DNA of 64,000 nt from Orbicella franksi. Taxonomy: Eukaryota. The stretch spans positions 5,456,001 through 5,520,000 of the forward strand of contig OZ116705.1 of assembly GCA_964199315.1 (NCBI GenBank). Reading direction: 5' to 3'. Both the position numbers and the translations under genes were made by a program. Below are positions 7,593 to 29,800 of this stretch, piece after piece. The first letter of the stretch is position 1; every line of letters begins with the position of its first letter. The notes beneath the pieces were generated by a model. It did not search any database. It was not told the origin of the DNA and saw only the letters and a program-made list of their open reading frames with translations.

Positions 7593-7960
7593 AGGGAACT
7601 TAAGCAACGACGACGGCGACGCCGAGGACAACGCCTAGTCAAAAATGATCTTATATTTTACTTGCTAAATTCGCGATTGTCTAAATCTGTTCAGTACGCC
7701 AATGGCTTTAAAAACGTGCTCATCCTAAATATGCAATGATAGCGTTTAGTTCCAAATGGAAATACGAAAAATTAGCCGTCATCGGTCGCGTTCCACAGAC
7801 TACGCAGAACTCGGTCATTTCACGTTCTTGTTTTACAGAGGACGGCAAAGAAAGGTACAAAGATGTATAATGCACGTGCAGAGCTATTGTTTTGCTCATT
7901 AAACCTTTTGTTTCGTGACGTTCTTGTTGCCGTCATCGTCGTGGTTTGCTTAAGTTCCCT
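7593..7960. mobile_element. MITE, AGGGAGCTTAAGC TIR family, copy 2
   Basis: TIR AGGGAACTTAAGCAA / TTGCTTAAGTTCCCT; collinear with copy 1. Confidence 0.85.
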
Positions 7961-9134: not shown

Positions 9135-9405
9135 ATGGAATTGGAAGACAAAATCAAGAAGCTCGAAGAACAATTCAAAGGTTTGCCTAAAGTCCTCATC
9201 AAGAGAACTCTCTGTGGTGATGACGTCAATGAGGACATTAGCAAAGCTACGGATCGGTTACAGGAATTTCAACAGATGAAAAGTAGCTTGTTTTTCAATC
9301 CAATGGCGGCTACTCCTGTTACAGAGGAATTAAAAGGGAGTTTGTGTGTCACCCCTGCGGAGGAATTCGACAGAAGCTCAGTGGCAAAGAATTGCATTGT
9401 AGAAG
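9135..9405 (+). CDS. Gene A exon: CUE-like domain 1
   Basis: MELEDKIKKLEEQFKGLPKVLIKRTLCGDDVNEDISKATDRLQEF; acceptors at 9098 or 9117; donor GAAG|GTAAAG. Confidence 0.75.
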
Positions 9406-12400
9406 GTAAAGACCCTGGGGGAACTTCCATATTAAAAAAAAAAAACGGGGTGTCTCGTCGGAAATTTTGAAAAGAACCCCTAAGAGGTACCAAGATCCCG
9501 TTTTGTGGGCGTGGCATGAAATTCTTTTCATCCCTAAGAGATACCGATTCTAAAACAACACACCAACAAATCGGGATCCCGGTACCTCTTAGGAGTTCAT
9601 TTCTACATTTACTACGAGCATCCCCGTCCTTTTTATATAGGAGTCCCCCCGAGAATTCCGTCAGTATAAACGCCGTCAAGAGGCATGGTCCATAGACATA
9701 GACATACACTTTATTTAGACACGGTAAAAGCATCAGTTCCAAGATTGAGATTTTGTTTTTTAAACTGAACTACATGTTTGCCGTATGGGAGTACGAGGAG
9801 GACAGTTGGCGATTTATCTCATTTCTAAAGTTAATAAATATATGTTATTGGCCGGCTGGGAGATCCATATAGTGAAAAACTGTGACCTCGGTCGCAAGCC
9901 GAGGGCAGCATTTTCAAGCCCGAGGTCACAGTTTTTCACTATACGGACCGACCCTAAGCCGGACAATAACCTGTTTATCTTTTCTTGCGGTAAATTTTTC
10001 AAGTGGGTTTGTTTATACAACTTTGTCATTGAATTGGCTCACGCGCCGTCTACAAACCATTCGTAAAAAAATCTAACGAGCGAATGAGCGAGTAACTCTG
10101 ATACCAGACAAAGAAAGATTTATTTCGAACTGCTTTATGTTAGTTGCATTTAGTTCACCAGTTAAGTTCTCCAAAACTGTTTTTCCGGTGTGAAATTTCG
10201 TGCAATTTCTGTCAGTCGTTGCGAATCACTCAAAATAAGACTTTTCTACCGTAAATTGGGTAACAGATAGCGAGGAAATTCGTTAAGTGTTTTCCACAGA
10301 AATTCTCGCAAATACAGCAACAATCAAAGAAGTAAACTCGACTGAAATTCGCTCATTTTTTACTTAATATTGTACAGAGACAGACAGGATTAAGCGCCAT
10401 TACAGCGCCGAGCTACAAACAGCCAAACAAACTCTCACAACTTCAAAAAAACTCAATTGAATTTAATTACAGTAACTTTCTTTGCCATTTGAAGGTGAAT
10501 AGAAATAACCTTGCGTTGATTAATCGTCTATGGAACACATTACCGCACGAAAATAGATCAACTCGACGGATTCCGCCCGCTTTGGCGGTCCGAATGGGAA
10601 AATTCCGCCCGCTCTAGGAACCAATCAGATTGTAGGTTTTGTTGAATTCCGCCCGGTCATGAGCTAAGAAAACGATAAAAGATTTTACTATTGGCTCTGA
10701 CGTTTGATGGAAGGCTATTCCTCACTGTAGCAGAAACTACGTTTCAAAAAATCGGTACGGGGCTTAGGCAGAGCCAATTTGTTTTCAATGTTTCTGAGTC
10801 CACTAATTGCAGAGAAATTGTGACAAATAACGAGTTGGCAACGAAATTAATACTAGAGAAGATGAGTGATTCAACAACAACGACGATGATTAAGTTACTT
10901 ATTTATTTTAATTTTCTTTCAATAAAAGGTACTGAGACAGCAAGGTGTCATAGGACAGGAGACAGAAAGGCAACAGATCCACCAAAACCAAAACCAAAAC
11001 CAAACTGGAGGAAATCCCATGGTAAGAATAACTCAAGACAGGATCCCATTAATGGGCTCGTGGTCAGGATGATTAAGAACTAATCACTCATCCGCCAGGA
11101 GTGGAATAGAGGAACTAATTGCTCTTTATTGCCTATCGACTTTACAGAACATGTCGAGGACTGTAAAGAGACTCGAGAACCGCCATTACCACTCTACATG
11201 TCTTCAGCTATTGGGCTGCCACCACCCCCACCCCCGCTGCTATCGCATCACCATGTACAGTCAAAGCCAACCCCACCTCGACCACATGCCCAGTCAACTT
11301 CACCCCCACCCTGGACATATGGACGGTCTACACCACGGCAACTCCTACCACAAGCCCATTCAACATCAGCCCCACACCGACCACGTACACAGTCAACACC
11401 TTCCCCACCCTCACCCCCACCCCTACCACATAGATGGTCTACATCAGAGCCACTCCTACCACATGCACAGTCTGCACCATCCCCACCCCCACCACATAGA
11501 TGGTCTACATTAGGACCATCTCTACCACATGCAGAATTAGGACCACCACCAACCCCACCACATAGATGGTCTGCACCAGGACCATCTCTACCACTTGCAC
11601 AGCACACATTGCCGGCACTAAGGGCATCCATCAAAAAGTGCGTCCACAGTGAAGTGATTGGCAATGAAGCAAGACAGGACAATGATGCAGCCTTGGAGAC
11701 CAAGAACAACGTGCAAGAAGAGCAAATGGAGTTAGATGATAAAATAAGAATGCTGAAAGAAGAGTTCAGTTCTTTGCCTAGGGTCCTCATCAAGAAAACT
11801 CTTTGTGATGATGCAGTGGATGGAGATGTTACAAGAGCCAAACAACGGCTAATGGAATTCACACACCAGTTTAAGGATCGAGAAAACTGTTTTAAGAATC
11901 CAGGGGGAGCTGGACGTGATGCAGGAAACTTATACCGAGACTTGAACAGCTCTCCTGCATTTGGACGTACTAAAATGGCAAGCACTCAGTTTGAGGAACA
12001 AACACTGCCTGGAAGAGGTAACACGATGAGACAAAAAACGAAACAGTAGAAGAGCTACACGTAGACAGCGTACGAACGCAGACGTATTTCCGGTTGTCGC
12101 TTGCTTCCGCCGAAAATAGGTAAGCAACAACCGGAAATACGTCTGTGTTCACGGGCTGCATGTAGGAGGATAGCAACTGGAACAGTTGCCCTAAACATAA
12201 TTTATGAAGGGCTTTTGTTGATGGTCGTATCGATAATGGTGAAAAAGTAACATTTTTCTAAAAACACATACTCAATTTCAAGACTAGTATGCAAACACCA
12301 TACCCTATTTACGACCGAAATGGCCAAAATCGATACCCTATTTATGACCAAAACGGCTGAAAAACCATACCCTTTGGGGTCACACATACCTATATAGCCC

Positions 12401-14600
12401 ATATAAGGGAGTATCCCCCGGGATGTTATGGGCGTTAGTCTGAATGACATAATAGCAGAACGTTTGTTTCCATAGAAAACCTGTTGCCTAGGAACTGGGT
12501 ACCAATGCCTCGAGATGACCGAGGAAATGACATCGATGTTCATCTAGTGAAACTAGCGAGCTCGTCAGTTGAGTACCAGGATGTGATAGAAAGATTACAA
12601 GAAACCGTCCCTTCCAATCTGATGATAAAGAGTGTAGAGCGAATACAAAATCCTTATCTCTACCAGGCCTACCAACTGCGGAAGCAAAAAATGGACCGAG
12701 ACAACCCTCAAGCAAACAACGAGCGGCAACTATTCCATGGCACAAATTCAGACAATGTAACGAAAATTAATACGCAAGGATTTGACAGAAGTTTTTCAGG
12801 ATCTGCACACGGTGAGGGTTTTGAAGTAATGGTTAGAGGGAGGCAATTTGCAATTAGTTTTTTAGTAATTTTTCCAACACACGCTAACAAAACTTGACAA
12901 AGTTCTCGCGGACTTTTTCAATAGACCGTATTCGTATTTTTAGTTTTGGATTGCAACTAGCTTGCAGTGGAGGCTCATGCGGAAAAGTATCATTAAAAAG
13001 GGATAAATGCTATTTGCATTTGAAAAGACTCTGCGCTTTAGCCTCAGTTGCAAGCTATTTCCAATACAATACCGAGAATACGAATATGGCCTTTTATTAT
13101 CCAACTGCAGCGAATACCGTCCAAGTAACAGTACAAATGTACAGCGATATTGTACAGTTATTTGTGCAGTAGAAAACCTGTTTGCCGCACAGGTTGGAGC
13201 GCGCACGCAAAACTGTCTCACTCTCCCTCTTTCATTGATAAATTTATTGACTACAACAGTTGGATAATAAATCTCTTATTAGATGTTACGGCACCACTCG
13301 TAAAAATATACAGCGATACTACACACCAAAACATCTAATAAGATATATTTACACACTAGTTGTGCAAGTGTCACTCATCATATCATTCGTAGTAGCCTCA
13401 GTGAACTCATATTGAGTAAATGTTTTTAAAAAAAATGAGACTAATATAAGTCTCGATCAATGAATATCTGTCGTTATGGTAGATATTTTTATCATTGCAA
13501 AGTTTATTGATAGTTTTATTAGAACGGTTTTCAATTGAGTGTCATAAAACCAATCACCCTAGCCAATCACAAAGTACGCAGATAATCCAGTGAACCAATC
13601 AAAACTCCAAGTACTTACATGTAGCTGACGCGAAGCGCGGGAAAAAGCGTGCGAGTGAATCCCGATTGGTTTTAGTTTTACTTCTGATTGGATGAAAAAG
13701 TGGCGCGAGTTTTTTGAACCAATCGGGTGGCGTAGTAAATGCAATGCCAATTACTTTTCGACACTCAGGTGAAAACCGCTTTATTGTGAATTTTGAAGTT
13801 ATTGCACCTGAAAACCCTAATGGGAAGGCTCAGAGAGCGAAGATAGCGTCACTACGTTTGAGTGTGGACAACACCAAAAAAGCCATTTTGTACGTAAATG
13901 CCGAAAATATCGTATTACATTTAATTGGACACGCCGATATCGTACTTAGATGTAAAGAACTGGTTCAAACTAGTAAACAGTGAACCTTAGCGTGTTTTCT
14001 ATCGAGAAAGTCATCGACTAAAAAAACGAGTAGGAGTATAATACACCTTTTATTACCCGGATTGGAGGAGGGTGAGAAGAGTGAGGAGGGTGAGGAGACT
14101 TCCACAAAAAAATGACGGGAAGAGCAGTTTGCGTTAGTCAACCTCGCTCCATGGCACCTTTCCCTTCCAATGGAAGGGAACGGAAGGGCCTTTAAAACGA
14201 AGTTGCTCGTTAGTACCGTACAGTGTCATGTAGTGATTTCCTCCCCCCTCTCTAAGCTTTTGTTGTGTATTTTTTCATGAGAGTTTTATGAAATAAGCAC
14301 TGACATCAATTTATTTTTCTTTTATTATAAGGAACTCTTTACGGTGCAGGAGTGTACTTTGCAAGAGACGCCTCATATTCAATACACTACACTGGTGGCA
14401 GTCATCAGGTTGTGTACCTCGCCCGGGTCCTAGTGGGGCGATATTGTAAAGGCAGCTCGGGGTTGAAGAAGCCTCCCCCCATAAACTCCGAGCAGCCAGA
14501 GATCCTGTTTGATTCCATGGTGGACGACACGAATAATCCTTCAATTTTTGTCGTATACTATGACAATCAAACCTATCCAGAATATCTTATTACAATTTAG
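9135..14600 (+). CDS. PARP gene A: mono-ADP-ribosyltransferase with two CUE/UBA-like domains and a Pro-rich region, ~612 aa (an upstream exon is possible)
   Basis: Exons 9135-9405, 10929-11021, 11148-12017, 12476-12811, 14332-14600; GT-AG, all phase 1; sum 1839 nt in frame; LFHGT...GVYFARDASYS...PSIFVVY. Confidence 0.85.
9417..9650. mobile_element. MITE, GGGACTCCCATAT-type TIR family
   Basis: Ends GGGGGAACTTCCATAT / ATATAGGAGTCCCCCC; internal CCCTAAGAGGTACC motifs shared with other copies. Confidence 0.75.
10929..11021 (+). CDS. Gene A exon: KATDPPKPKPKPNW linker
   Basis: Acceptor TTTCAATAAAAG, donor CATG|GTAAGA; paralogous to gene B exon ending 18850. Confidence 0.75.
11148..12017 (+). CDS. 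Gene A exon: Pro-rich repeats + CUE-like domain 2
   Basis: ORF 11129-12049; acceptor TTTACAG, donor AGAG|GTAACA. Confidence 0.85.
12062..12157. mobile_element. Short palindromic MITE (AGACGTATTTCCGG family)
   Basis: CAGACGTATTTCCGGTTG / CAACCGGAAATACGTCTG; relative at 50185-50284. Confidence 0.75.
12476..12811 (+). CDS. Gene A exon: PARP catalytic domain, N-terminal half
   Basis: LPRNWVPMP...IERIQNPYLYQAY...LFHGT...GFDRSF; donor CACG|GTGAGG. Confidence 0.95.
13520..13783 (+). mobile_element. MITE, TAGAGCGGTTTTCA TIR family
   Basis: TIR-bounded; inverted homolog at 33671-33946. Confidence 0.8.
14332..14600 (+). CDS. Gene A last exon: PARP catalytic domain, C-terminal half
   Basis: GTLYGAGVYFARDASYS...LARVLVG...FDSMVD...IFVVYYDNQTYPEYLITI*. 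Confidence 0.95.
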
Positions 14601-15199
14601 AATCAACACACGAGAATAATCAAGGCGGCTGGCAATAGTTTCCAACACTTTCTGCAACCAGAGCGGAGAGCAGAGAGCGGATCCTTTCCGGATCGAGTAT
14701 TTAGTTACATTCTAGGGTCAACGCAAGGACATAGTTTAAGTGGCTGGGACAGCTTCCAAATTTCTATCAGCAGAAGCCCATGCTGTTATACTTTTACGGA
14801 ACACTTCTACCAAACTTTCCCAAGTGATGTTTCAATATTGGCATTATTCCACAAATGTATAGTCATTGTTTAGCAAGCTGTGGTCATTTTCATGGCATAA
14901 TAGGTTACATAGCAACGATACTACCTGTTCAAAGCACCCGTAACAGTTTAGCTTTATGCGTGTATGACTGAAAAACGACTCGGCATACCCCATTTTTATT
15001 ATCTTTATTATCAAAATTCTTACGAGGGGGTTTAAATCTCTAAGCTCGAAGAAAAAAAGTTCCCTTTGTGGGTATTATGTTAAATGCCTACTTAATGTTG
15101 CGTGACACTAATCTAGTAGGTCTCTCCTTTACCATCCTCTCAATATTGAATAAGGACTCGGACCATACAAAATTTGATTGCTCGTCGAGATGTATCACT

Positions 15200-15690
15200 C
15201 ACTTAACGCGGGCGATTTCCCTTGTTTTTATCTTACGTACTTAACTAACGCTAAAATCAAACATTATGTTGGCCTAATGCAGCAAAAGTATATTTTATAT
15301 TGGCAACAGGCCATGCAAAGCTCTACTAAACTAGAATTTTTCAACACTTTTAAGAACGATTATATACCCTCCTCTTATTTAGGCATAAAAAGCAAACCAA
15401 GCGAAAGAAAAGAACTAGTGAAATTTAAGATAGGCGATCACAAACTAAGGATTGAGACTGGTAGATATGATCAAATTCCACGAGTTAACAGACTCTGCCC
15501 TATTTGTGATCATCTTGCTTTGATCTACGCAATATTCTACTTTCAAATCAAACCAATGAAACCTGATTGCTATATCATAACGTTATTTTATGATCACGAT
15601 AACCGTTACTGTTTTAGCTTTAGTTTTGGTTTACAAAAGCTTTTGCAAGATTGTATGTATTTATGGTCATGCAAATAAAGCTAGTTGTTG
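15200..15690 (+). mobile_element. 5'-truncated LINE 3' remnant
   Basis: KLEFFNTFK...HKLRIETGRYDQIPRVNRLCPIC is typical of LINE ORF2 C-termini; followed by AATAAA and a GTTGTTGT tail. Confidence 0.75.
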
Positions 15691-15882
15691 TGAAATATTA
15701 AAAGAAGTCTTCGCAAACTCATTTCGGTTTTTGTTATTACGAGTCAAGATATGGGTCCGTTGTGGAAGATGCAGTTCCGTATATCACCCGGCCGACGCAT
15801 GAAACTGTGTGATTTGGTGGGAGGTAATATGCTGAAGAAAAGCACCAAAGGATGTGATGAGCTGTTAGTGTTGAGGAAAGAG

Positions 15883-16135
15883 TGAAAGACGACAAAACCT
15901 TTGCTTTTCTTCTTTGACGGCATGAAAAATAGTAGCTTACAATTCGTCGGAAAAACTTTGACCTGCTCGCGGAAGTTGTAATATATAAACAATCTTGCTC
16001 GTGTCATGTGACCGCGTAACCATAGATAGATTTGTTTCTCCTCGATAACCTCGTTTAGAATCAATCATTTTTCCGTGAGAATTTTTTTTACAGGTAATAA
16101 AATGTTTCAAAGAGATCTATCTGAAAATACAACAA
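15883..16135 (-). repeat. Dispersed repeat, inverted relative to copy at 19765-20041
   Basis: Shared ORF-track text MTRARLFI...NCKL.FFM.SKKKSKGF and DNA TTCTAAACGAGGTT...GGTCACATGACACG. Confidence 0.85.
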
Positions 16136-16262
16136 ATGTATTTTTCTTCAAAATTGTCTTAAATTAATCTTGTTTACACAGGAAAGAGTGGGTTTATCTC
16201 CGTGGCAGCTGGCAATAGTGATAACTTTGAAAACTGCACAGACTACAATTTAGAATATAGTT

Positions 16263-16508
16263 CTGGGCCGGGTCGTTCAAAGCCCGATTAAGCTAACTCA
16301 GGATTAGCAAGAATTTTTGATTTCAGTTTTGTAACTTTTCGGTTAGGTTTTCTGTTTATAATGTTTGTCCTTCAGTTTTGAGCTTGACTAAGCTTAAACT
16401 ACACAAAACGTGGGCAGTAACAAACATTTTTATGCAAGAAAAATTGATACTTCAGTTAACTTTTAATCCTGGGTTAGCGTTAACCGGCTTTCGAACAACC
16501 CGGCCCTG
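16263..16508. mobile_element. MITE with GGGCCGGG TIR
   Basis: CTGGGCCGGGTCGTTCAAAG / CTTTCGAACAACCCGGCCCTG. Confidence 0.75.
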
Positions 16509-17376
16509 TTTCTTTTTATCACTTTTTCCCAGGTAAACCCCATGATATGCACGCCAATTGAGAATAATCCATTGTGAGTCGTCCGACAAAATTTATTAAT
16601 AGCCTTCCATATTTGCGAGCAGATCGATTGAGCAAGTTGTTCCACTATTGCTTAATTAATGGACCCATGTCAGACCTTGGAAAACATTTCCCGTCCCTTT
16701 TTCATTTTATCATTGTGTATCTTCCGCCAAAAGTAGATAATAGCCTCCCACGATGGCGATCGGATCTTTGAGTCACTTATTTAATTAAAGGAACTCGCTT
16801 CTGCACCTGTCAGTTTGTGTGATCAAACTGCCTTCCTATTGGTCAATTGGTTTCTCAAGGGTTGCTCAATTCATATTTGAGAACGTACTTCCTTTTCAAT
16901 TTGCGCTAGGCGCATTCCATGGGCGCGCAGCAGTAAAGGGTCACGAAGTACGGGCGTTTACTTGTTCACATTTAATGTCCCAGTATATAGAGCTCTTATA
17001 TGAGAATATTCAGTTGTATTTGCTGTAAATAAGTTAGTTTTTTTTTCTGTATTTTTGTGTTGGATTGATTGAAGAATTTGCGGAAAAGAATAGAATATCA
17101 GAGGCAAGTTTTGCTGGTTGCCATGTAAGTCCAAATAAAAACGGAGTCACTGGGCAAACAGGACAAAGATGTCACCTAGCTATGCAAATATGCCAATGCA
17201 TCCCGAGCTATACATACCGGCGAAACTAAGACGTTTTCTCGAAAGAATTTGTATATAGACAAAAACGAATGGAGTTTAATTTTTGCTCGTTTCTTTTTTG
17301 GAAATGAAATGAAACTTAATGATTGTCGCTTGGGCCTAACATTGCGTCAAGTTCTGGTCGAAAATTAATCGGATTA

Positions 17377-17717
17377 AGGCCTATTCCGAATTACTGCTAC
17401 TGCGCTGCTCAACTAAATTCAAAAACACGACGTTTGAAACCACTCAGTTCGGCAGGCTGAATTAAGTGCAGCACGACTACTTAGCACGGTATGTCTTGCC
17501 GTGCTGCACTTGACTTCAAACGACGTGTTCTGCTGCATCAGCTGTCGTTGCTTTATAGCAATCCATTTAAAATGGTCTTCAGCAAAGCAAACTTCTTCCG
17601 ACCTTCGGCGCCACTGAAGTCGACGTTTGAAACCACTGCCGTTCTTTTGTCATGGCACTGCCGGGCCAAATTCGTTTGAGTTCAGCAAGGAAGTAGCAGG
17701 ACGTTTGTACTAGGCCT
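17377..17717. mobile_element. Degenerate MITE with AGGCCTA TIR
   Basis: AGGCCTATTCCGAATTACTGCTAC / GTAGCAGGACGTTTGTACTAGGCCT; internal CGACGTTTGAAACCACT repeated. Confidence 0.6.
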
Positions 17718-18735: not shown

Positions 18736-18850
18736 ATGACGATTGAGACGAATGAGGAAACCAAGACCGCCCTGTATGTCAAGACAGAAGCAAGGAAGGC
18801 ATCAGATCCACAGAAACCAGCATCAGAACCAAAGTCGTGGAAGCCACGTG
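18736..18850 (+). CDS. Gene B first coding exon (candidate)
   Basis: MTIETNEE...KASDPQKPASEPKSWKPR; donor CGTG|GTAAGA; missed by the ORF track (short). Confidence 0.7.
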
Positions 18851-21800
18851 GTAAGAATCAGTCTGCATAGTTAAGGACCCTCAGTAAACCAAATGCTAAT
18901 CAACCAAAAGGTTAACGGAAAGGTTCTCGCATATGGACAGATTTTTAAGATTTTAAAAAGGTTCCTCGCTAACTCACAGTTTAATTTCACTTTCTATTTG
19001 TTTCAATGGCTTATTTTCCCTGGTTGTTTGTTTCAGGTCCACCAGGCGCATGCGCATGCACGGCCTTGATTTCCGAGAATTCGACTTGTTTTTGACGTGT
19101 GTAAAATACATTTTCAAATGTTTTTGATGTTGTGTAAACATCACAATAAAATTAAAAATTACCAGCAAAATTACCTCAAAACCTGTGGCAAAACCACGTT
19201 GCCGAAACTTTGCAATAACAAATGAAAAAAATTGCCATGAAGAACAAAAATAGGTTCATTGACTTCTGAACTTAGATTTAATTTAAAGAAGAACAAAGTT
19301 ATAAAACCCAAGCGAAACTGGTGGGCTTGGAAATTTTAAAAGGATGTTTCTTAACTTGCGACAGGAGCAAAATTAGATAAAAAACACAAACATTCATTGG
19401 CTAATTTGATTGGCAGTTCTTCTCGGAAAATCGCTCTGCCAGATACCATGAAACTTTTGGCTCTATGGTCTGTAAACAAGATTAAGACAATTTTGGAGAA
19501 AAATATATTTTTTTGCATTTTGAACTTAGGTTTAATTTAGAGAAGTACAAAGTTATAAAACCTAAACCAGACTGGTGGGCTTGGAAATTTTAAAAGGATG
19601 TTTCTTAACTTGCGACAGGAGCAAAATTAGATAAAAAGGCACAAACATTCATTGGCTAATTTGATTGGCAGTTCTTCTCGGAAAATCGCTCTGCCAGGTT
19701 CCATGAAACTTTTGGCTCTATGGTCTGTAAGCAAGATTAAGACAATTTTGAAGAAAAATCTATTTTTTTGTTACTTCAGATAGACATTTTTGAGACCTTT
19801 TATTAAAAAAATTCACGGAAAAATGATTAATTCTAAACGAGGTTATTGGGGAAAAACAGTTCTGTCTATAGTTACCTCTGATTGATAGCTGTTATCAGTT
19901 TGTAACTCGGTCACATGACACGGGCAAGATTGTTTATACATCACAACTTCCGCGAGCACATCAAGGTTTTTCCGACAACAAATTGTAAGCTAATATTTTT
20001 CATGTCGTCAAAGAAGAAAAGCAAAGGTTTTGCCGTCTTTCAAATGCTAAGAAGGAACCCAAACGAAAAAAAAAGACACCGAAATCTTTCAATAAGGATT
20101 ACTGGCGATGCTTGCAAATTAAAAGGGTCGTATTTTTAACAGTAGAAGTAGTTTGCGTGGACGGAGGAAAACGAAAGAGACGAGAAAATAAATTAACCGT
20201 CAAGCGGAATGCGAAGGTATAACTGATAGATACATTATACCTCAGAGATCATTGCCTGAGCAGGCGACTTCCGGTTGTATATTTGATATTCATTTCATGA
20301 CCTGTTGCCAATTGCCTATTATTTGTCCTCGACAGAAAGTAACGCCTTCCACGGATGAATCAACAAACAACCGCAGCGCACTCTGGTTGAGAGAGTTTCT
20401 TAAGTATATATCACTCCCGGGAGGGAGAGCGGAGGGGACTCCGATGTAAATATGACGGGGGGTGCTCGTCGTACCTTTAAGGGGTTAAAAAGGCGGATTT
20501 GGTACCTCAGGGCCTGATTAAACCGAAAAAAAAAATTGACAGGAGATAATGTGTTGTTTCAGAATTGGTACCTCTTAGGGGTGAAAATATTTCAAGCCAA
20601 GCCCACAAAAAAGGATTTTAGTACCTCTTACGGGTTCTTTTCAAAATTTCAGACTCGTGAGCATCCCAGTCCTTTTTTATGCGGGAGTTCCCCCCGGGAT
20701 ATCACTGATCTAGTAGGAATGGAAATCATAACAAATAACTGGTTTTTCCATCTTTTAACAGAATACTATGAAAGCTTCAAGGAGTCACGAGAAGGGTCAC
20801 GACCACCGAACGATACGTCAGCTCCGTCAACAGCTCCACCGTCCCCAACACATGTACAACAAACATCGTCACCATCCCCATCACATGTTCAAAAAACACC
20901 GTCACCATCCCCACCACATGTACAACAAACATTCTCACCATCCCCACCGCATGTACAACAAACATCCTCACCATCCCCACCACGAGCATGGCCAATGCCT
21001 TCATCGCCCGCCCCTCATGCACAGCAAACAATACCGCCGCCATTACCACCAAAACAAGCGCAGCTCACAATTCTGCCACCTTTGCCGCCAAAACAGGCAC
21101 AACCAACACTACCGCCATCTTTGCCGCCAAAACAGGCTCACCTCACATGTCCGCCACCTTTGCCGCCAAAACCGGCTCACCTCACATGTCCGCCACCTTT
21201 GCCACCAAAAAAGGCTCAGCTGACTAACAAGGCAAAGATAAACTTCGAGGAACAAAATCTGGGGAGAAGAGGTAAAAAAGATTTCATGACATAAGGAATA
21301 AAATGTAAAGATCTTTGTTCCGTCTGAATTTTTCGCTAGTTAACGCTCACTGGCATTGAGTCTTGTAATGGAATTACTTGCCCTTTGGGGTGCGCTTTTA
21401 TATGTTCTTCATGTTAGCTCAGTTAAGTTGATAGGATAATTAGTGGAAATTCGCCAGTTTTTTGGAGCAAATTTAAGACAAACCAAGAGTCGGCATGAAT
21501 TTTTAGCTCAGTTTGAGACTGTAGGATTGATTGGTGGAGTTTCTATAATCATTGTCCTTCAATTTTGACTTTAACTTCTCAAACTCTACAAATCGTCAGC
21601 AGTGAGAAAAAAAAAACAATTTTACATCTTGCGATGTTCCTTTCATTGTCTGCTGATCAGTAGAACTTTTACTTAAGGGGATGTCCAGGAAACATCTCAC
21701 TAAAAGTGATATTCGGCAGACGATCTAAAGAACATCGCAAGCTACTTCGCGCGCCAAAGCGACAACTTGAAAACAATTTTACATCTCAATTCAGTTGCGT

Positions 21801-23637
21801 GGTGTTTAATCCTAGATTAGCGTAATAGGCCTAGAGTATTTACAGATTTCATCGTATTTTTATTCAATCGTTGAACGCGCGGATAAAACCACGAGAGAAT
21901 TGAATGCCAGTGCAAAACGGGAGACATGACAGGGTATGGGGTAGGGACCGAGAAACTGATAGATTCTTCGTTTGGCTCGTTTCGTTCGCCTCCCCACCCT
22001 TACCCCCGCGTGCCTCAAGCTCGCTTCGTTCGCTTTTTCTTTCGCTTGCGTCGAAAAATAAAGAGACTGTGAACAGTTTATTATAGGCCAATCTGTTTTG
22101 ATAATTATAGTATCGTTTCTGTCCGGTCCATAGGAAGCGTACTGCCCAGGAATTGGATACCGATGCCAACTGATGACAAGGGAAATGATGTCACCGTTCA
22201 TCTGGTGAAACTATCGAGCTCGTCGCCTGAGTACCGGGACGTTGAGAAAAAATTTAATGAAACCGTCTATATCGAGAAAATCAAGAGCATCGAGCGAATA
22301 CAAAATCCTTATCTCTACCAGGCTTACCAACTACGGAAAATAAAGATGGACCGTGAAAACCCCCAAGAAAACAATGAGAAGGGATTGTTCCATGGCACCA
22401 ATTCAGCCAACATAACGAAAATCAACACTCAAGGATTTGACAGAAGTTTTACAGGATCTGCACACGGTGAGAGGTTTATGCTTTTAACCCTTTGACGCCC
22501 AAGTAGCCATATATGGCCACTTAATGGTCGTGCTCTTTGTACTACTTGCGACGTCATCAATTTAAATATCACCTGATATTATTGATAAGCAGATGGTAGT
22601 ACTAGGCTAGGCCTTCCCGCACAATGGTCAGGTTTAGATATCGACGACATTCCGATGTCGCAAATCGAAAAACAACCTTATCAGTTTCGGTGCAAAAGCG
22701 GTGGTAAAATGGTCCACGCTTATGCGCATGCCCGGAATTAAAATTTTGCTCAATTTTGTACCTAATCCTCGAAAAATCTCTCCTTTTAGTAAAAAAAAAG
22801 CTTTCTTAACAAAACTTAGGCTTAATTAGCGTCATGGCAGCTAAAAAACCTGCCTAACGGTTAAAAACGGTATTTTTTGACGAAAGTTTGGTATTCAAAG
22901 GTTTAAGTAAATTCCAGGGGCTGATACAGGATTTTTCAAGGGGATTGGGGGGGGGGGAGGGGTGTTGGCTGGTATCTTGGGGTTTGAGAATCAACGGGGC
23001 ATCCCCCAATATGTGACAATTTGAGAAATGGAACCTAATTGAATACTGTTACACCAGAAATATTAGCAATCAGCACAAAGTAAAAATTATGATGAAGCAC
23101 CTGCCCAGGAAGTTTACCTTTATTTCTTTCATGATATTCACAACTGTTTTCAATTAAGTTTTCTTAATTTTAGTTCCTCCAAAGAGGGAGTGGCTAACCA
23201 CCCAACTTACCTTCTCTAGATACGCCCCTAAACTCAGTTAATAGCTAAGTTTTATAGACAAAGAGAATTGTATCACATACTTCACTTTTAACTGTAGTCT
23301 GCACTTTCCCACTAAATAACTAGACTTTCCCACTAAATAACAAAATGCGTATTACATCTATGTTTCAGGAGCTATATACGGTACAGGAGTGTACTTCGCA
23401 AGAGATGCCTCCTATTCTATGGATTACACTGGGGGCAGTCGGAGGGTTATGTACCTCGCCCGGGTCCTAGTGGGGCGATATTGTAAAGGGAGCCCGAACA
23501 TGAAGAAGCCTCCGCCCATAAACCCCAAGCAGCCAGAGATCCTGTTTGATTCCATGGTGAATGACATGAAGTTCCCTTCAATCTTTGTCACATATTATGA
23601 CAATCAGTGCTACCCGGAATATCTTCTTACTTTCTAG
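18736..23637 (+). CDS. PARP gene B: Pro-rich N-terminus + mono-ADP-ribosyltransferase, ~408 aa
   Basis: Exons 18736-18850, 20762-21271, 22134-22466, 23369-23637; GT-AG, all phase 1; sum 1227 nt in frame; exon-by-exon paralog of gene A. Confidence 0.85.
19267..19775 (+). repeat. Two-copy tandem duplication, ~254-bp period, in gene B intron
   Basis: TGAACTTAG at 19267 and 19521, followed by near-identical sequence. Confidence 0.9.
19765..20041 (+). repeat. Dispersed repeat, partner of 15883-16135
   Basis: See 15883-16135. Confidence 0.85.
20431..20695. mobile_element. MITE, GGGACTCCCATAT-type family
   Basis: GGGGACTCCGATGT...GGTGCTCGTCGTACC / TATGCGGGAGTTCCCCCC. Confidence 0.75.
20762..21271 (+). 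CDS. Gene B exon: Pro-rich tandem repeats
   Basis: SPSPPHVQQT and PPPLPPK repeats; acceptor TTTTAACAG, donor AGAG|GTAAAA. Confidence 0.85.
21832..22080 (-). mobile_element. Uninterrupted copy of the MITE that hosts the RTE
   Basis: Reverse complement reads ...TTTTATCCGCGCGTTCAACGATTGAATAAAAATACGA..., matching the rejoined 2822-2834 / 5999-6020 flanks. Confidence 0.85.
22134..22466 (+). CDS. Gene B exon: PARP catalytic domain, N-terminal half
   Basis: LPRNWIPMP...IERIQNPYLY...LFHGT...GFDRSF; donor CACG|GTGAGA. Confidence 0.95.
23369..23637 (+). CDS. Gene B last exon: PARP catalytic domain, C-terminal half
   Basis: GAIYGTGVYFARDASYS...IFVTYYDNQCYPEYLLTF*. Confidence 0.95.
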
Positions 23638-24135
23638 AATGAAAATGACGTCAATTTATAGAGTTAATTATTCACAACAGTTGCACATTTTCACCACGGA
23701 AATTGACCTATATAATGCTCGGGTTGTCTTCCTTGCGGTGGTAAAGAACAATTAGAAAATTAACTAAGCGTCTTCTAGCCAAGCTACATCCTTCAAACTC
23801 GGCGAATGCAATCTTCCACTCAGCATTTTAACGTTGCAATTCACAAATTGTGTAAAATTCAGTTTGGAAAACGTTATTTGCCTTCGCATTCCCATACAAA
23901 CACTATAACTTCTGACCGCTTTGCCTACTCGTCAAGGTAGCGTCGAAAACCGTGATAAGCCCTCTTGTCTGGAAAATTCTTTTGCTAAAATCTAATCACT
24001 GGAAAGTACAATACTAATGTTAATGTGTTTTAGTCAACTTAATTTTTGCTGATTTTGTTTTACCAGTAATCTCTATTATAATATCCAATGAGGTAATTTT
24101 TATAGCAAGTTATTGTTTTACATGCCATGTAAGTA

Positions 24136-24694
24136 CAGTAGAATCCCGGTAACTCGAACTTCGATAACTTAAATTTCTTGCTAACTCGAACTGAATTTCT
24201 TTTCCCTTGATAAAATTTACTCCGATAACTCGAATTCTGGTTCATGTAGCTCGCCAGGGACGTCATCCCATTAGCTTTTCTTATCGTGTCATCGGTAAAA
24301 ACACTCAAAACTAACACCACAGCAATTTGATTTTAATAGGCCCTTTGTACGATCCGGTCACATGGTACGGAATAAATTATGCTGGGACGCAAGTTGCACA
24401 GTGGGACTTCTAAAACAAAGGAAAGTCGGACCGGACTGGTACGAGTTCCTTTGTTTTGGAAGTCCCACTGTGTAACTTGCGTCCCAGGATAATTTATTCC
24501 GTACCATGTGACCGAATCCTGCAAAGGGCCTATTAGTGCAACAGACCGTGCCTTTAGCTGTCACCGTATAGTGAGGCGCTGAAAAATCAGTAAACTATCA
24601 ATTATTAACATGGCGAGTTGGATATTCAGTAGACCCCGCTAACTCGAACTGTTTTTCGTTTCCCTTCAGAGTTCGAGTTACCAGAGTTCTAATG
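24136..24694. mobile_element. TA-flanked Tc1/mariner-type MITE carrying a nested foldback element
   Basis: TA|CAGTAGAATCCCGGTAACTCGAAC ... GTTCGAGTTACCAGAGTTCTAATG|TA. Confidence 0.75.
24334..24535. mobile_element. ~200-bp foldback (near-perfect palindrome) MITE
   Basis: TAATAGGCCCTTTG...CACATGGTACGGAATAAATTAT mirrored by ATAATTTATTCCGTACCATGTG...CAAAGGGCCTATTA. Confidence 0.85.
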
Positions 24695-24879
24695 TAGTGT
24701 TTAGTAGCTTTTATATTTGTGAAGGTCAGGGCTTACACTTTTGTATATCTATTTTGTCAAACTTTTGAACTTTGGTACTGTAATTAATTAATTAGTGATA
24801 ATTTATTGGAGGGCGTCAACAGTTTCTATTGTGTAAATATGCCACTGGTGTCACTCTCATTGAATAAAGCTTACGCCCC

Positions 24880-25264
24880 GGGGGGGGGGGGGACTCCCAT
24901 ATGGACTGGACGGGGATGCTCATCGGAAATTTTAAATTTAACCCCTAAAGGAGACCAATCTGGGCGTGGCCGAAGCTTATGCAGACCTCTAAAAGAGACC
25001 AGTTTATAAAACAGACAAATAAAAAGTACAGTGACTTTTAATCAATTTTTATTGAATTTGTTTATATGAATTGACTAAATATAAAGAATCAAAATTCTTT
25101 CTGTTTTGTTATTTCTTCGCGTGCAACCCTTAACGAGACCTTGACGGCTAAAAATGATGACATTTTGCCCAGAACATCCTAAGCGAGACCAAAATCCGAA
25201 ATTTACACCCCTAAGCGAGACGACGAGCATCCCCGTCCATTCCATATGGGAGTTCCCCCCCCCC
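24880..25264. mobile_element. MITE, GGGACTCCCATAT-type family (subfamily shared with 32938-33332)
   Basis: GGGGACTCCCATATGGA / TCCATATGGGAGTTCCCC. Confidence 0.8.
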
Positions 25265-26290
25265 GGGGCTTACGTACCTTTTCACTCTTACTAGTTTATC
25301 AATTCCGTATCCTGCCACGCTTTTGGCTATATCCCGCCATCCCGCCCCACTCAGAATGTTTATCCAGACCCCGCCTGATTAGAGTCACAGGTCTCCGCGT
25401 CACGTCCGTAACCTGTGATTTACTGCTTTTCATTCCGCATCCCGCTGTCAATTTTAAAAACTAATCCCGCATCCAGCCTGTTGACAAGAGCAAAACCCGC
25501 TCCCGCCGAAGAAATTTTATCCCTCATCCCGCAATTAAAATTTCTGACATCCCGCATCCCGTCCCCATTTTAACTCTCATCCCGCATCCCGCCAGACCTA
25601 TGATGGACTTGTAGGAATTTTTTCCGGGTTGCCCAATTAGCATACGACTTTAGATGAGACGTCATGCAAGATACGAACTGACTCCTGACATTGAAGATGC
25701 TTGGTGATTTCTTAGATTTTTTAGATGCTTGATGATTTCTTATTGAAGGAAATACGAATAAATGTTTTCAAAAACAGCAATATTTGAATTTCTGGGCGGC
25801 AAAAGCGCTAATAGGCCCACACAAAGACAATACATTCATTGCAAAAGTTTAGTTTTTGAACACGCGTCACGCAACAAGTGATTAATACATCGGGCTCCGA
25901 AGAGTGTCCGAAGTTCTTCGTTCCATACCCTCTCAACATTCAAAGATTGAAGCGTTTATGTCAATAAGGTAAATATTGTGAACAAAGACCCCGCTATTTC
26001 AATTTTATTCTCGGGGAAGGGAGGTTGATGAGATAGAGATTGTCCCCTTCAGTTCAGCCAGTAGCTTTTACCAATTTCAGCCGCTTTCCCTAAATCAGTA
26101 AAAAAAAAAAAACAGAAAGTAAATTTGTTCTTAACTTTGTCATTCTTTTAGGCTCATACTGCGTCTAATATACCGTGAATATACCAGAAAGACAGGTTAT
26201 TCTTGATCAGATGGGAAGCGGAAGTCGCTTGTCGCCGTTGTGATTTGGCTCGTTCCCAGTCTCTCTTTCTCCTGATATTTTTCCTAGAAA

Positions 26291-26417
26291 ACCGGAAGAA
26301 GACGATAATTTCATTCAAAACACCAAAGTGAAACCGCAACACGGCAAATTCCATGTTGGTTTATCTTTCGTAAGAAGCATTGAAACCGACCAGTTGCAAG
26401 TTTATACAGATCAGAGG
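26291..26417 (+). promoter_or_regulatory. Candidate promoter / non-coding first exon of gene C, with ETS-like and IRF-like motifs
   Basis: Strong donor CAGAG|GTAAGT at 26417; ACCGGAAG 26291; AAAGTGAAACC 26325-26335. Confidence 0.35.
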
Positions 26418-26846
26418 TAAGTTATTAAGGATCTGTAAGGATGATTTTAGCCTAACTTCATGATCAAGTCGCCTTGTGTTGACTCAGTGTTTTCGTTTAG
26501 GTTTGTTTATGAACGAAGTCGATGAATTTGTTTCCTCTGTAACAAATATATTATATGCGCTTACTAGGTTCACTTACACGCCTGCAGAAGTAATTTAGAC
26601 TCATGAAGCCGTAGCTATTTGTCCGGTAATCCTTCCAGGAAAACTATTGGCGAGGGCTGCACGTTGATTTCGATTTTTGGCATTAAGGTGGATTATAAAT
26701 ATGAAGTTCTTCAAATGTAGCTGAAATAAGTGAATATGATACGTTTCACTTTCTATAAAGTTACTAACATGTAACACCACGCTTCCATTTAGAACTTCCT
26801 CCGGTTTCAAAGCCACTGGAGCGAGATTTTAACAGTTACATCGGCG

Positions 26847-26868
26847 ATGGACAACTCTTTCTATCATG
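26847..26868 (+). CDS. Gene C initiating micro-exon MDNSFYH
   Basis: GCGATGG Kozak context; donor CATG|GTAAGT; phase 1 matches the acceptor at 27975. Confidence 0.7.
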
Positions 26869-29800
26869 GTAAGTGAGTGAAATTCGAAGATCAGGTAAAA
26901 ATGTAGTTATGTGTTTAGCCATGCGATAGAATTATTCGACAGTGGTGTTGTGAGAGAATGTTTAGTTAGATATTACTTTTGATTTTACTGTATGGCTTAC
27001 TAAACTATTATTAGCGGGAAAAGCGATTTATTTAGCTAGTTTCGGTCAGTTCTGTATCATATATTCATCATGTTTTCGTTGCAATCAAAGATACATTCAA
27101 GAGCTACCCAGTTCCCGTAATGGATGCAACGTTCTGCGTGGAATAAATGTTTAAAATTTGAAAATCACTCAATGCTTGTTGTCAATTTTAGTTGTCCCTT
27201 TCAGTCTATTTAAATAACGTTGTTTTGTCGCCGCCGTTAAAGGGTAATCCCCCTGTTTGTGGAGGGGAAATTTATTTCCCAAGGCGGAAGTAATGTGATA
27301 TCGTACACCAAATTTTTCTTTTCTGCAATTGCTATCATTTTTGCTTCATTAGGTGAGGGCTAAAACATCCAAAATGAACCTGATACTGGGAAACAGCAGA
27401 ATGCACTAAATAAATCTAGTACCTCGAGTACTGCTGAATATCTCCAAAAATATTTATTCATGAACACACTGACTGTATGTCACATCACAATCGTAATTAT
27501 CTTAAGACCGAAAAATTGACTGATAAACAGACAGACGGCACTGTTCTACGGGATTATAGCACAATGAAAACCAAAACATAATGGCCGAACGGCCAACTCT
27601 TTGACAGATCGAGCGCCGATATGAAAGAGACACAGTCTAACGCGTGGGATCCCTTTGTCCTTCGGGATTTCTAAACGAACTCAGTCACGAATTCTCAGAC
27701 GGTCCAGGTCTCTCGCGGCCATGCACTCTTTCTGTGCGTGGCTGCGAATGACCTGGACCGTGTGAGAATCAGGCTACGAATGACGTGTCTATATTTCACG
27801 TTTATTATTGGAATTTTGTATCAATTTTCGCTTATCTCAAATATCCGGATTAGTTTTTAGTTCTAGTCAAACGTTACCTTTCCTTCGATTGAAGTCAATT
27901 TTGTTCATCACTCTTATAATGTGTATGAGTGACCATGACGTTCCAAAATATCATTTAATGAACTTTGATTTACAGAGGATGAATATGAAGAAGAAGTGGA
28001 AGAACAAGACGAAGATTTCGAAGAAGAGGAAGATGATTTTGATGTCAGTCGCTTTGTTGAGTCAGAAGATGACAATGGGGAAGAGAAGGCTAAAAATAAT
28101 TTGACAGCGGAGTCGTCATCTGTTACTGGCAAGAACGTACAAGACGAAGACCCCGAGGAGATGGACGAAAAACTGAAAAAGCTTGTGGAAATTTTCAGCT
28201 GTTTGCCACCAGTCCTGATCAGAAGAGTTCTAAATCGCGATGACGTCAAGGGAAACGTTGAAATAGCAAGCCAGCGGCTACAGGAATTTCAAGATATGGA
28301 AAATCCACTGGACATATTCGAAAGCCCACCGACAGTCAAGCCCTTGACAGGTACTGTAGAGGAAACGAGTTCTAGAAGAACTGATCAGCCGAGGAATTTC
28401 CGAGGAAAAAAGAGGAGAAATAGGATTAGAAGCGACAATGACATGCCCAAGGAACATGGAGAGATACAAGACTTGAGAAGAGATAGCTTTGACGATACCA
28501 GGGCGGAAAACAGGGGCGGTTACCAAGGTAATCGAGGCCAAAATGCAAAGCAAAGAGGAGGGTACAGGGGAAGGTCAAGAGGAGCACCAAGGGGAGGTTC
28601 CAGAGGCGGTTTTGCACAGGGACAAAGTGACTACCAAGGATTCAGAGATAATGATGTGGGATTGTCTCAAGGATGTGGATTTGGTGGCGACGACAACTTC
28701 CAGCCTCAACGAGGACATGGAAACCGCGGTGGTCGAGGACATCCACCGAAACCGAAGCCAAAGAACAGGGGTCGAGGCTGCAGGGGAAGAGGTAGTAATT
28801 ATCAGACACCTGGCGAAAGTTTCCAGCATGGCGATCAGTTTTGTTATGGCGATTCTCAGCCTCAATTCAACCCAAGGCAGCGTTATCCAGAGAGAGGTGG
28901 AGCCAGCCAACAGAATCAACGAAGGACTTCTGACGGTAGTGCGGTGAAACGCAGTGCTGATAACGACTCTCTACTAGGTCCATTTGGGGGAGATGATCCA
29001 AACAGACGCGGTCAAAGAAACCGCGGGAGGCCTCGAAATAATGGCAACAGAGGGCGTGGTCAGGGAGGAATGAGACGTGCGCAGAGCTTGTCGAGTGCCA
29101 CAGAGAGTGGTGACCAGAACTCCGGTCAGGCTGGATCAAATGTAAAAGAGCAGTCTCGATTTGAACGGAATCAGTTACTCGTTTGTGGACTGAGTGGGTC
29201 AACGACTGAAGAATGCGTGACGAACTTCATCGAAGTTATGAGCGGTGAAGAGGTGAAGGAAGTAACGCTGAGAAACGACAAAGCCCTGGTCACAATGGCC
29301 AACGACATAACAGGTTAGTCAAGTTGAGTTGTTATTTCACAGTTCATTTGGAGATATCTTCTGTATCGTTATTTTTCTTACTGTCAGCCTATTTCAACCC
29401 GCCATCTTTTGAGTCCAATAGGGTCTAACCTTGAAATAGGAGTTGGAATTTTAAGCTGATTTCAATTCAATTTCCGCTGCAGTGAAATCAACATTGGTCA
29501 ATGTTGTTTTTCCATAAGGTTCTCCCGCGCATGGAAATATTTCAGCAACGAGCACGAAGTACAGCAACATCACTATTTTGTGAAAAATTGTGTTTCTGAA
29601 TACTAAAGTATGATATACTAGGGGAAAACTCTCCTATAAGTCTCCAATGTTATTATAGTCAATGAGTTTTCTGAAGTTTGTTTGTTTCTTACAATAGACC
29701 CTTTTAGCTTGGGTGGTATGTTTTCCCATCACAGACCACGTGATATTCTCTAGAGAATTTTTCTTTTATCCATCTAAAAATTATTCATTCGTATACACAG

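Follow-up and report, generated by a model that had tools for sequence, protein, structure and literature searches.

What is the motif of about 47 aa that recurs in a 64,000-nt stretch of Orbicella franksi DNA (hereafter the window), and does it couple ubiquitin sensing to mono-ADP-ribosylation, as the initial annotation proposed? Three homologous copies are present, all on the forward strand, and direct translation reproduces all three peptides: A1 (9135..9275) starts at the start ATG of one gene, here called A, and forms its aa 1-47; A2 (11726..11866; aa 315-361) lies in exon 3 of the same gene, downstream of a Pro-rich repeat region; and C (28155..28295) is near the N-terminus of a PARP14-like gene, here called C. 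These limits are slightly wider than those first given (9147-9270, ~11738-11858, and ~28164-28291). In-window tblastn gives E-values of 5.6e-16 for A1 against A2, 1.7e-11 for A1 against C, and 2.4e-9 to 4e-10 for A2 against C, with 18 of 47 columns invariant among the copies, so that the reported threefold occurrence is reproduced. The window yielded no fourth copy at E<0.4 in this search, and the 67-sequence family profile described below added none at E<1.

Copies A1 and A2 are joined into one gene by RNA contigs from X1 and X4, with GT..AG junctions at 9405|10929, 11021|11148, 12017|12476, and 12811|14332; the joined CDS is an open frame of 612 aa, on the forward strand. Exon 1 (9097..9405) begins where the transcript contig does, with CDS from 9135. 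Exon 2 (10929..11021; 93 nt, splice sites checked) encodes a PPKPKPKP stretch; the transcript contig covering it has 95 nt between its two matched pieces. Exon 3 (11148..12017), covered by overlapping contigs, contains Pro-rich repeats, motif A2, and a linker. The PARP catalytic domain is divided between exon 4 (12476..12811; N-terminal half, triad His in LFHGT) and exon 5 (14332..14600; C-terminal half, Tyr in GVYFA and Ile in SIFVV, stop at 14598-14600). Both score above the Pfam gathering cutoff for PF00644 (38.8 and 28.6 bits, cutoff 26.7), and their closest PDB relatives are PARP14 and PARP15 chains (exon 4 against PARP14/15, E 3e-18; exon 5 against PARP15, E 2e-22). The three short catalytic sequences align to the PARP15 triad positions, giving H-Y-I, not H-Y-E. 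By domain score and triad, the gene A product is a clade 3 mono-ART of the PARP14/15 type.

Copy C opens a full PARP14-like gene. Its first large coding exon (27996..29318, +) is one ORF comprising an acidic tract, motif C, an RGG/PKPKPK low-complexity region, and the start of the first RRM; aa 2-415 of an Orbicella faveolata PARP14-like RefSeq model (P0164) map to 28116-29312 at 91% (tblastn). The rest of the gene (29970..38611, +) was delineated by Pfam and by tblastn with P0164, which is collinear with it at 87-99% identity, with exons at ~29970-30221 (RRM_PARP14_3), ~31145-32905 (KH region), ~34499-34675, ~35032-37086 (two Macro domains and WWE), and ~37652-37978 and ~38294-38611 (PARP catalytic, H-Y-I). 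Pfam on the window exons thus gives RRM_PARP14, KH_PARP14, Macro, WWE, and PARP in order, the KH matches being weak (E about 0.01). In both genes, then, the motif is fused to an intact H-Y-I catalytic domain of the mono-ART type, in agreement with the initial annotation.

Among 1.84 billion proteins, a profile built from the three copies retrieved 67 cluster representatives at E<=1e-3, of which 51 reach E<=1e-10; the recurrence is therefore far beyond chance. The reading that the similarity is fortuitous, or that the copies are non-coding or pseudo-exon remnants, found no support apart from two poly-A RNA runs (X23 and X24) with no reads on gene A exons. It is refuted by pairwise E-values down to 1e-16, the 67 conserved clusters, spliced transcript contigs over the exons in X1 and X4, the open 612-aa frame, and the inclusion of the motif exon in RefSeq models, and its probability is close to nil.

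About 25 of the 67 clusters were examined as full sequence or locus, and all but one have the order acidic tract, motif, RGG, RRM, or motif followed by linker; the sole exception is a repeat-protein false positive. In all the others examined the motif opens a coral PARP14-like gene, in some cases as tandem copies. One locus (L002) has the order motif, RRM_PARP14_3, Macro/WWE, PARP; in another (L003), three copies of the motif precede a PARP exon. Among annotated full-length proteins, the motif is N-terminal in Pocillopora verrucosa XP_058949771.1 (“PARP14-like,” 1766 aa), an Orbicella faveolata “PARP 14-like” protein (2008 aa), and an Oculina patagonica protein, and a Stylophora pistillata protein has two N-terminal copies; the PARP catalytic domain in full-length orthologues scores 88 bits (PF00644). 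Conservation within the gene C motif exon peaks at the motif (0.70-0.77, against 0.23-0.5 in the flanks), and this peak between weakly conserved flanks indicates purifying selection on the motif. It constitutes a previously unannotated family, so far found only at the N-termini of stony-coral PARP14-type clade 3 mono-ARTs.

A three-helix fold of the UBA/CUE class is supported by structure prediction. AF2 models of A1 (helices 3-13, 19-26, and 35-46; pLDDT 88.5) and of C with the 67-sequence alignment (helices 4-17, 23-30, and 39-53; pLDDT 85.4) share one helix-loop-helix-loop-helix bundle, obtained in 10 of 10 models at pLDDT 72-88; the predicted helices are of about 10, 8, and 12 residues, with two loops, as in UBA-like folds. 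The positions conserved in the 67-sequence alignment (L16, F20, L23, P24, L27, I28, L32, D36, V37, G39, D/N40, A44, L48, and F52) form a UBA-like core pattern: hydrophobic core residues and a loop 2 Gly, followed by [DN]-h-x-x-A-x3-L.

In four structure searches the top matches were UBA, CUE, or UBA-like domains. Those from the PDB by Foldseek were all UBA/CUE (e.g., the EDD UBA: TM 0.78, rmsd 1.4, prob 0.99), and those from AFDB Swiss-Prot were Tollip CUE domains (TM 0.82-0.84, rmsd 1.2 Å); the Foldseek E-values are all at least 0.47. VIA gave Z-scores of 5.4-8.5 for 50 listed matches, nearly all UBA-like folds but including two 16S rRNA methylases; most are below 8, a range which by the tool's own guidance can reflect a common helical arrangement. 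An unbiased search of 48,161 chains was led by the Dcn1 UBA, EF-Ts, and the Tollip CUE, with a Cue2 CUE-Ub complex at rank 9 and a few non-UBA three-helix units also among the matches. An ESM Atlas shape search returned no match. The three-helix bundle, set beforehand as the check on the initial annotation, is what AF2 predicts, with the Tollip CUE as best structural match.

Could AlphaFold have over-packed a conserved amphipathic stretch, such as a coiled coil or short linear interaction region, in an otherwise disordered N-terminus? The segment is very short, with low-complexity flanks, its Z-scores are within the range of common helical arrangements, and weak Pfam noise matches to the coiled-coil-type families ABC_tran_CTD, SlyX, and SOAR would suit such a stretch. 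It would not be expected to give an identical bundle in all ten models, however, and the motif has no heptad pattern; it has instead a Pro-containing loop 1, a D-V-x-G-D/N loop 2, and L/F/I/A residues at core spacing, and its hhalign register with CUE covers all three helices. A non-globular stretch is accordingly an improbable reading.

CUE is the closest type in both shape and sequence register. In pairwise hhalign comparisons (P-values not corrected for database size), the family aligned to the Tollip CUE, a sequence verified against PDB 1wgl, with Prob 75% and P 2.5e-5 over 38 columns, and in the same register to the CUE domains of Vps9 (P 0.0015) and CUEDC1 (P 0.03); reversed Tollip, as a control, gave P 0.26. 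This register places F on F, G on G, A on A, and L on L. Protein-language-model neighbors are mostly CUE and UBA clusters. Like the CUE domains of Tollip, Vps9, Cue2, gp78, and CUEDC1, the coral motif is a (predicted) three-helix bundle of about 40-45 aa, with a Phe ending helix 1, I-x-x-[VI]-L of helix 2 eight residues later, a loop 2 of the form G-[DN]-[LIV]-x-x-A, and A-x3-L in helix 3. It differs in having a loop 2 two residues longer, x-F-[SK] (followed three to four residues on by a conserved L-P) in place of MFP, and L-Q in place of the di-leucine, and in being found on coral PARP14-like proteins only.

Membership in the CUE family itself is unproven. The window copies have no match to PF02845 (CUE) at E<=10. 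No Pfam family reached threshold over the 67 members; CUE matches occur in five (best E 0.0037), do not outrank noise families, and reach at most ~14 bits against a gathering score of 21.1 (two are listed at 14.3 and 14.2 bits, E 0.03). PDB sequences, searched with a profile, yielded neither CUE nor UBA. The motif does not fit the UBA model either: none of the 67 members matches PF00627 at E<=10, and the spacing from F to helix 2 is of the longer CUE type, while in the UBA M-G-F/Y loop helix 2 follows about 5 residues after the aromatic. The CUE/UBA pattern of the initial annotation therefore stands as regards the predicted fold class and a CUE-like register, but not as regards a Pfam-level CUE match.

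In established CUE-ubiquitin structures the ubiquitin-contacting residues are MFP and the di-leucine. Over the 67 sequences in the hhalign register, the family has neither in canonical form. The Phe of MFP is kept in 63 of 67, but E/V/I/Q stand at the Met position and mostly S/K/C at the Pro position, with F-P present in only a few members (P0011, P0030, P0035, P0057, and P0061); the first Leu of the di-leucine is present in 66 of 67, while the second position is Gln in 47. Because the family does not keep the Met, the Pro, or the second Leu, “ubiquitin sensing” is a fold-based proposal, and on the fold ubiquitin binding seems plausible at somewhat under an even chance. The picture of gene A as a minimal mono-ART with tandem readers is thus borne out for the short protein of two modules and a catalytic domain (X1/X4 junctions, open 612-aa frame), with “reader” as the conjectural part.

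Several UBA-like domains bind partners other than ubiquitin. The coral domain might likewise serve in dimerization or in docking to a further protein (a DTX3L-like E3 or a second PARP14-like paralogue, for example), by analogy with SMARCAD1 CUE1-KAP1, KHNYN CUBAN-ZAP/PARP13, and DSX/DMA domain dimerization. The altered contact residues fit such a role, and non-ubiquitin binders are among the structural neighbors (SMARCAD1 CUE1, KHNYN CTD, DSX, EF-Ts, and TAP), some with equal or better Z-scores (HBS1-like 8.5, KAP1-bound SMARCAD1 CUE1 7.2-7.7, EF-Ts 7.4, DSX 6.9, KHNYN CTD-ZAP 5.9). Against it, Tollip, EDD, Cbl-b, and Cue2-Ub, the best matches over the full length, are true ubiquitin-binding CUE/UBA domains; human PARP14 is tied to polyubiquitin-rich p62 bodies and DTX3L (PMC12084362); and avidity-based readers of ubiquitin chains typically have tandem copies on flexible linkers. 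A different ligand is a tentative possibility, with the odds tilted against it. The KHNYN C-terminal CUBAN/CUE-like domain (PDB 9bgl; Z 5.9 to the model) likewise has three helices in a UBA-like fold and acts together with an antiviral member of the PARP family, but it is on a separate protein, binding the ZAP RNA-binding domain (and NEDD8/ubiquitin), with no PARP fusion as in the corals.

MARylation-ubiquitin crosstalk is an active field, including DTX3L/PARP9/PARP14, ADPr-ubiquitin esters, and PARP14 condensates in p62 bodies; the vertebrate PARP-ubiquitin link is in trans and hard to dissect. Perina et al. (2014; PMC4245714) conclude that each of the six PARP clades is linked to ubiquitination. 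PARPs fused to UBA, U-box, UBCc, and UIM elements are recorded there, so the independent coupling of ubiquitin sensing to MARylation suggested by the initial annotation, while plausible, would not be unprecedented. In the protist and fungal cases a PARP catalytic domain is joined to a domain of the ubiquitin system, as (putatively) in coral. Those of Acanthamoeba, Trichomonas, and fungi are UBA/UBCc fusions of clade 6 (PARP6/8-like), and Dictyostelium has a U-box in clade 3; a CUE-like domain on a metazoan PARP14-type protein is not among them (PMC4245714). Human PARP10 has UIMs, as initially stated, and like the coral proteins is a clade 3 H-Y-I mono-ART with a ubiquitin-reader element (a candidate one in coral) and RNA-binding/Gly-rich regions (PMC4245714), but its UIMs are short single helices just before the catalytic domain, whereas the coral domain is a predicted three-helix unit at the extreme N-terminus. 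Human PARP14 shares the RRM, KH, Macro, WWE, and ART architecture of gene C and is described without a UBA or CUE domain, again as first stated (PMC13224862). It is functionally coupled to polyubiquitin-containing condensates and an E3 ligase (PMC12084362, PMC13224862), but in trans, through p62/NBR1 UBA domains and DTX3L, while the corals have a candidate reader in cis. The coral CUE-like domain on PARPs is a new form of a known theme of ubiquitin-domain/PARP fusion.

The reading we prefer, with a probability of about 0.5 for the whole, is a UBA-like, CUE-closest N-terminal domain of coral PARP14-type mono-ARTs that may serve in docking. This small three-helix domain, predicted to be folded, occurs in one to three copies per protein, and low-complexity linkers (RGG/PKPKPK or Pro-rich) tether it to the remainder. 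It heads a complete PARP14-like protein in gene C (RRM-KH-Macro-WWE-ART); gene A is a trimmed paralogue retaining only two domain copies and the catalytic domain. Most likely the domain would recruit the MARylating domain to a target or assembly modified with ubiquitin or a ubiquitin-like protein, and tandem copies would add avidity. If ubiquitin is bound, the PARP14 lineage would, in an early-branching animal, have a built-in reader that wires it to ubiquitin, and the 612-aa paralogue, with two readers and a catalytic domain, would be a compact natural tool for reader-directed MARylation. The stronger version, in which the domain is a working reader of ubiquitin or ubiquitin chains and the gene A product (reader-reader-ART) MARylates ubiquitylated cargo or ubiquitin itself, is rather doubtful. 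Were it true, the gene A product would be a minimal enzyme, and an invertebrate would encode in cis a counterpart to the PARP14/DTX3L/p62 coupling of vertebrates and to ADPr-ubiquitin hybrid signaling. For annotation, the gain is a domain that Pfam misses. One RefSeq fragment carrying the motif is labeled “troponin T-like.”

The initial annotation had reported three copies of a short peptide motif in the window, and translation confirms all three exactly and in place. With the domain limits used here they lie on the + strand at 9135-9275 (A1) and 11726-11866 (A2), both in gene A, and at 28155-28295 in gene C. Their low pairwise E-values in tblastn searches inside the window (5.6e-16 for A1 against A2, 1.7e-11 for A1 against C, and 2.4e-9 to 4e-10 for A2 against C) mark them as homologous, with 18 of 47 columns invariant; chance similarity was rejected as an explanation. 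There is no fourth copy in gene B or the rest of the 64-kb window, where the next-best tblastn match has an E-value of 0.47, and a 67-sequence family HMM run on the six-frame translation of the window likewise finds none beyond these three.

The window contains four PARP genes, all on the + strand, and their models are supported. Gene A (9135-14600) is defined by transcript contigs and an open coding sequence. Contigs from two RNA libraries (X1 and X4) give GT..AG junctions at 9405|10929, 11021|11148, 12017|12476, and 12811|14332, with AG-checked boundaries placing exon 2 at 10929-11021 and the start of exon 3 at 11148; the joined exons form an open coding sequence of 1839 nt (612 aa). The transcript is pieced together from several contigs, none spanning its full length, and since these overlap by k-1 at variant positions, they are most simply read as a single transcript path. 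The encoded protein begins with the motif (aa 1-47), followed by a PPKPKPKP linker, about 170 aa of Pro-rich repeats, the second motif copy (aa 315-361), a further linker, and a PARP catalytic domain. The catalytic exons pass Pfam PF00644, with human PARP14 and PARP15 as nearest relatives (E 3e-18 and 2e-22, respectively), and the predicted triad of His (in LFHGT), Tyr (in GVYFA), and Ile (in SIFVV) is the H-Y-I signature of a mono-ADP-ribosyltransferase, as judged from sequence. Two poly-A RNA-seq runs from 2026 with the same species label (X23 and X24) have no reads on the gene A exons (region 9000-14700) in about 12% of each run, so that the splice evidence rests on the assembled X1 and X4 contigs; expression seems to vary with condition or sample. 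Three intronic stretches of gene A (9382-9572, 12056-12437, and 13011-13774) have very high RNA contig depth, with many loose ends and odd joints; they most likely represent dispersed repeats whose transcripts come from other loci, outside gene A proper.

Adjoining gene A, gene B (about 20536-23637, + strand) lacks the motif and is a natural “domain-less” comparator; it has one Pro-rich exon (20536-21294) and a pair of PARP catalytic exons whose DNA matches that of their gene A counterparts at 79-83% identity. Gene C (27996-38611, + strand) is a complete PARP14-like gene in which a single uninterrupted ORF carries the motif, an RGG/PKPKPK region, and the beginning of the first RRM; a 2008-aa RefSeq protein (P0164), “poly [ADP-ribose] polymerase 14-like [Orbicella faveolata],” is collinear with 28116-38608 at 87-99% identity. 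Together with the coral labels on RNA and DNA runs containing the same DNA, this match assigns the window to Orbicella or a very close relative. Gene D (about 42340-45285, + strand) is 57-66% identical to gene C; WWE is encoded at 42340-42630 and the catalytic exons lie at 44041-44355 and 45028-45285. Two further series of ORFs are found on the + strand near the start of the window: two at 141-814 built from tandem 18-nt repeats that translate as S-D-I-Q-S-N units, probably a minisatellite rather than a gene, and several long ones at 2907-6039 with endonuclease/reverse transcriptase-like translations, resembling a non-LTR retrotransposon.

A search with the three-copy profile against 1.84 billion cluster representatives returned 67 proteins at E≤1e-3, 51 of them at E≤1e-10. 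One (P0048) was rejected as a repeat-protein false positive; about 25 others were examined as full sequences or fetched loci, and the rest in the motif region alone. Those examined are exon-level ORFs of two kinds, one like gene C (acidic tract, motif, RGG, and RRM start) and one like gene A (M-E-L-E-E-K... motif, then a linker). Both gene types share two short conserved elements: an acidic tract with F-[DN]-V-[ST]-x-F upstream of the motif (27996-28100 in the window, and in P0129, P0163, and P0087), and a P-K-P-K-P-K-P stretch in the downstream linker, also found in gene A exon 2 (10929-11021). Tandem motif copies occur in P0011, P0023, P0027, P0057, and P0061, and a Stylophora protein (P0162) has two; for P0001 and P0003, look-ups added no informative context. 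In one outside locus (L002) the order is motif, RRM_PARP14_3, Macro/WWE, and PARP. Another, from a different coral assembly (L003, ENA ERZ25071797; span 7941-15201), has three copies on one strand (7941-8729, 9636-10301, and 13368-13829) followed by a PARP catalytic exon (14830-15201), and could represent a form of gene A with three readers.

Among full-length proteins, the motif is N-terminal in Pocillopora verrucosa XP_058949771.1 (“PARP14-like”), an uncharacterised Stylophora pistillata protein, a hypothetical protein of Oculina patagonica, and the Orbicella faveolata PARP14-like protein; none of these four has a Pfam annotation over it. The O. faveolata protein XP_020630997.1 (P0129), labelled “troponin T, cardiac muscle-like,” maps to 28047-28682 of the window and is the N-terminal exon (acidic tract, motif, and RGG) of the PARP14-like gene; its label is likely a misannotation prompted by the abundance of Glu. 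When 33 N-terminal exons are compared, the motif is the best-conserved stretch of 40 residues: the residue in the window is matched at 0.70-0.77 here, compared with 0.23-0.5 in the flanks and 0.62-0.65 at the RRM start. This peak indicates purifying selection on what would be a folded unit.

Structure prediction is consistent with such a unit. AlphaFold2 gives three helices from both the three-copy alignment (3-13, 19-26, and 35-46; pLDDT 88.5) and the 67-sequence alignment (4-17, 23-30, and 39-53; pLDDT 85.4), all ten models agreeing over the two runs. A Foldseek search of the PDB is headed by UBA and CUE domains (EDD UBA with ubiquitin, Mud1, Cbl-b, gp78 CUE, CUEDC1, and Tollip), with the EDD match at TM 0.78, rmsd 1.4, and prob 0.99. 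Against AFDB Swiss-Prot, the first seven matches are Tollip CUE (TM 0.74-0.84, with an rmsd of 1.2 in the top five), and DMRTA2 DMA, EF-Ts, AUP1, SMARCAD1, and further CUE/UBA domains come next; Foldseek E-values are 0.47 or higher because the domain is so short. Re-scoring with VIA-align gives Z of 5.4-8.5, where values below 8 may, by the tool's own caveat, reflect a common helical arrangement; nearly all rows are UBA-like folds, and 2 of 50 are 16S rRNA methylases. A Foldseek-independent search of 48,161 chains places Dcn1 UBA (7.7), EF-Ts (7.6), and Tollip CUE (7.4) at the top, with the ubiquitin complexes of TDP2 UBA (6.9) and Cue2 CUE (6.8) at ranks 7 and 9, and a clamp-loader chain and the KAP1 complex among the ranks in between. 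In a protein-language-model search, CUE clusters make up 22 of the 100 nearest neighbours and UBA clusters are also present (score 0.82, to be taken as a lead only); an ESM Atlas shape search with the motif gave no match. A simple coiled coil was considered and rejected.

Pfam searches with the three window copies (E≤10) returned just a coiled-coil noise match (ABC_tran_CTD), and those with the 67 members gave CUE in five, below threshold and level with noise families. When PDB chains were searched by sequence, using the family profile and two FP-bearing members as queries, the matches were designed helical proteins and unrelated entries, with no CUE or UBA. The family profile was also compared by hhalign with single CUE sequences from the PDB (a Tollip CUE identical to 1wgl, with CUE segments of CUEDC1 and Vps9 from the same PDB comparison). 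The resulting values, which are pairwise, address an a priori hypothesis, and would be borderline if corrected for a Pfam-sized search, were probabilities of 75% for Tollip (P 2.5e-5, 38 columns), 17% for Vps9 (P 0.0015, 19 columns), 1.6% for CUEDC1 without helix 1 (P 0.031, 28 columns), and 0.2% for a reversed Tollip control (P 0.26, 2 columns). All three CUE sequences align to the family in one common register: its near-invariant Phe corresponds to that of MFP, I-x-x-V-L of helix 2 to I-x-x-V-L, and helix 3 agrees at its G, A, and L, with loop 2 two residues longer in the family. Given the borderline corrected values, homology to CUE-type domains is graded likely, short of established. Of the proposal that the motif is a CUE/UBA-class domain, the UBA-like, CUE-type three-helix fold is supported by prediction, but Pfam has no threshold CUE match and family membership is unproven.

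In CUE-ubiquitin structures (Vps9, Cue2, and Tollip), ubiquitin is contacted by the M-F-P that ends helix 1 and by a di-leucine that ends helix 3. In the register given by hhalign, 63 of 67 members retain the Phe and 66 the first Leu; the family has E, V, I, or Q in place of Met and mostly S or K in place of Pro (a few members have a true F-P), and Gln replaces the second Leu in 47 of the 67. These changes, and structural neighbours with other partners, divide the odds over three readings. It is plausible, if tentative (probability about 0.4), that the motif binds ubiquitin or a ubiquitin-like protein. It could instead bind a non-ubiquitin protein or dimerise, a reading held with somewhat less credence; many of the structural neighbours are UBA-like domains that have other partners. 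A ubiquitin-type ligand is favoured by the tandem copies on flexible linkers, by the nearest full-length structural matches, which are true ubiquitin binders, and by the coupling of human PARP14 to DTX3L and polyubiquitin-rich p62 bodies (PMC12084362). That the motif is a non-globular segment is improbable.

The initial annotation also held that vertebrate PARP14 has no such domain, in agreement with the composition of the human protein: RRM1-3, KH1-8, MD1-3, WWE, and ART, neither UBA nor CUE being among them (PMC13224862). The same source, a 2026 perspective on PARP14, mentions neither cnidarians nor corals, nor UBA or CUE, and no paper in the literature library searched joins “PARP14” with “CUE domain.” The initial annotation's attribution of ubiquitin binding in PARP10 to UIMs likewise agrees with the literature (PMC4245714). 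Fusion of ubiquitin-system domains to PARPs is already documented: besides the UIMs of PARP10, UBA and UBCc are fused to protist and fungal PARP6/8 homologues, and a U-box to a Dictyostelium clade 3 PARP (PMC4245714).
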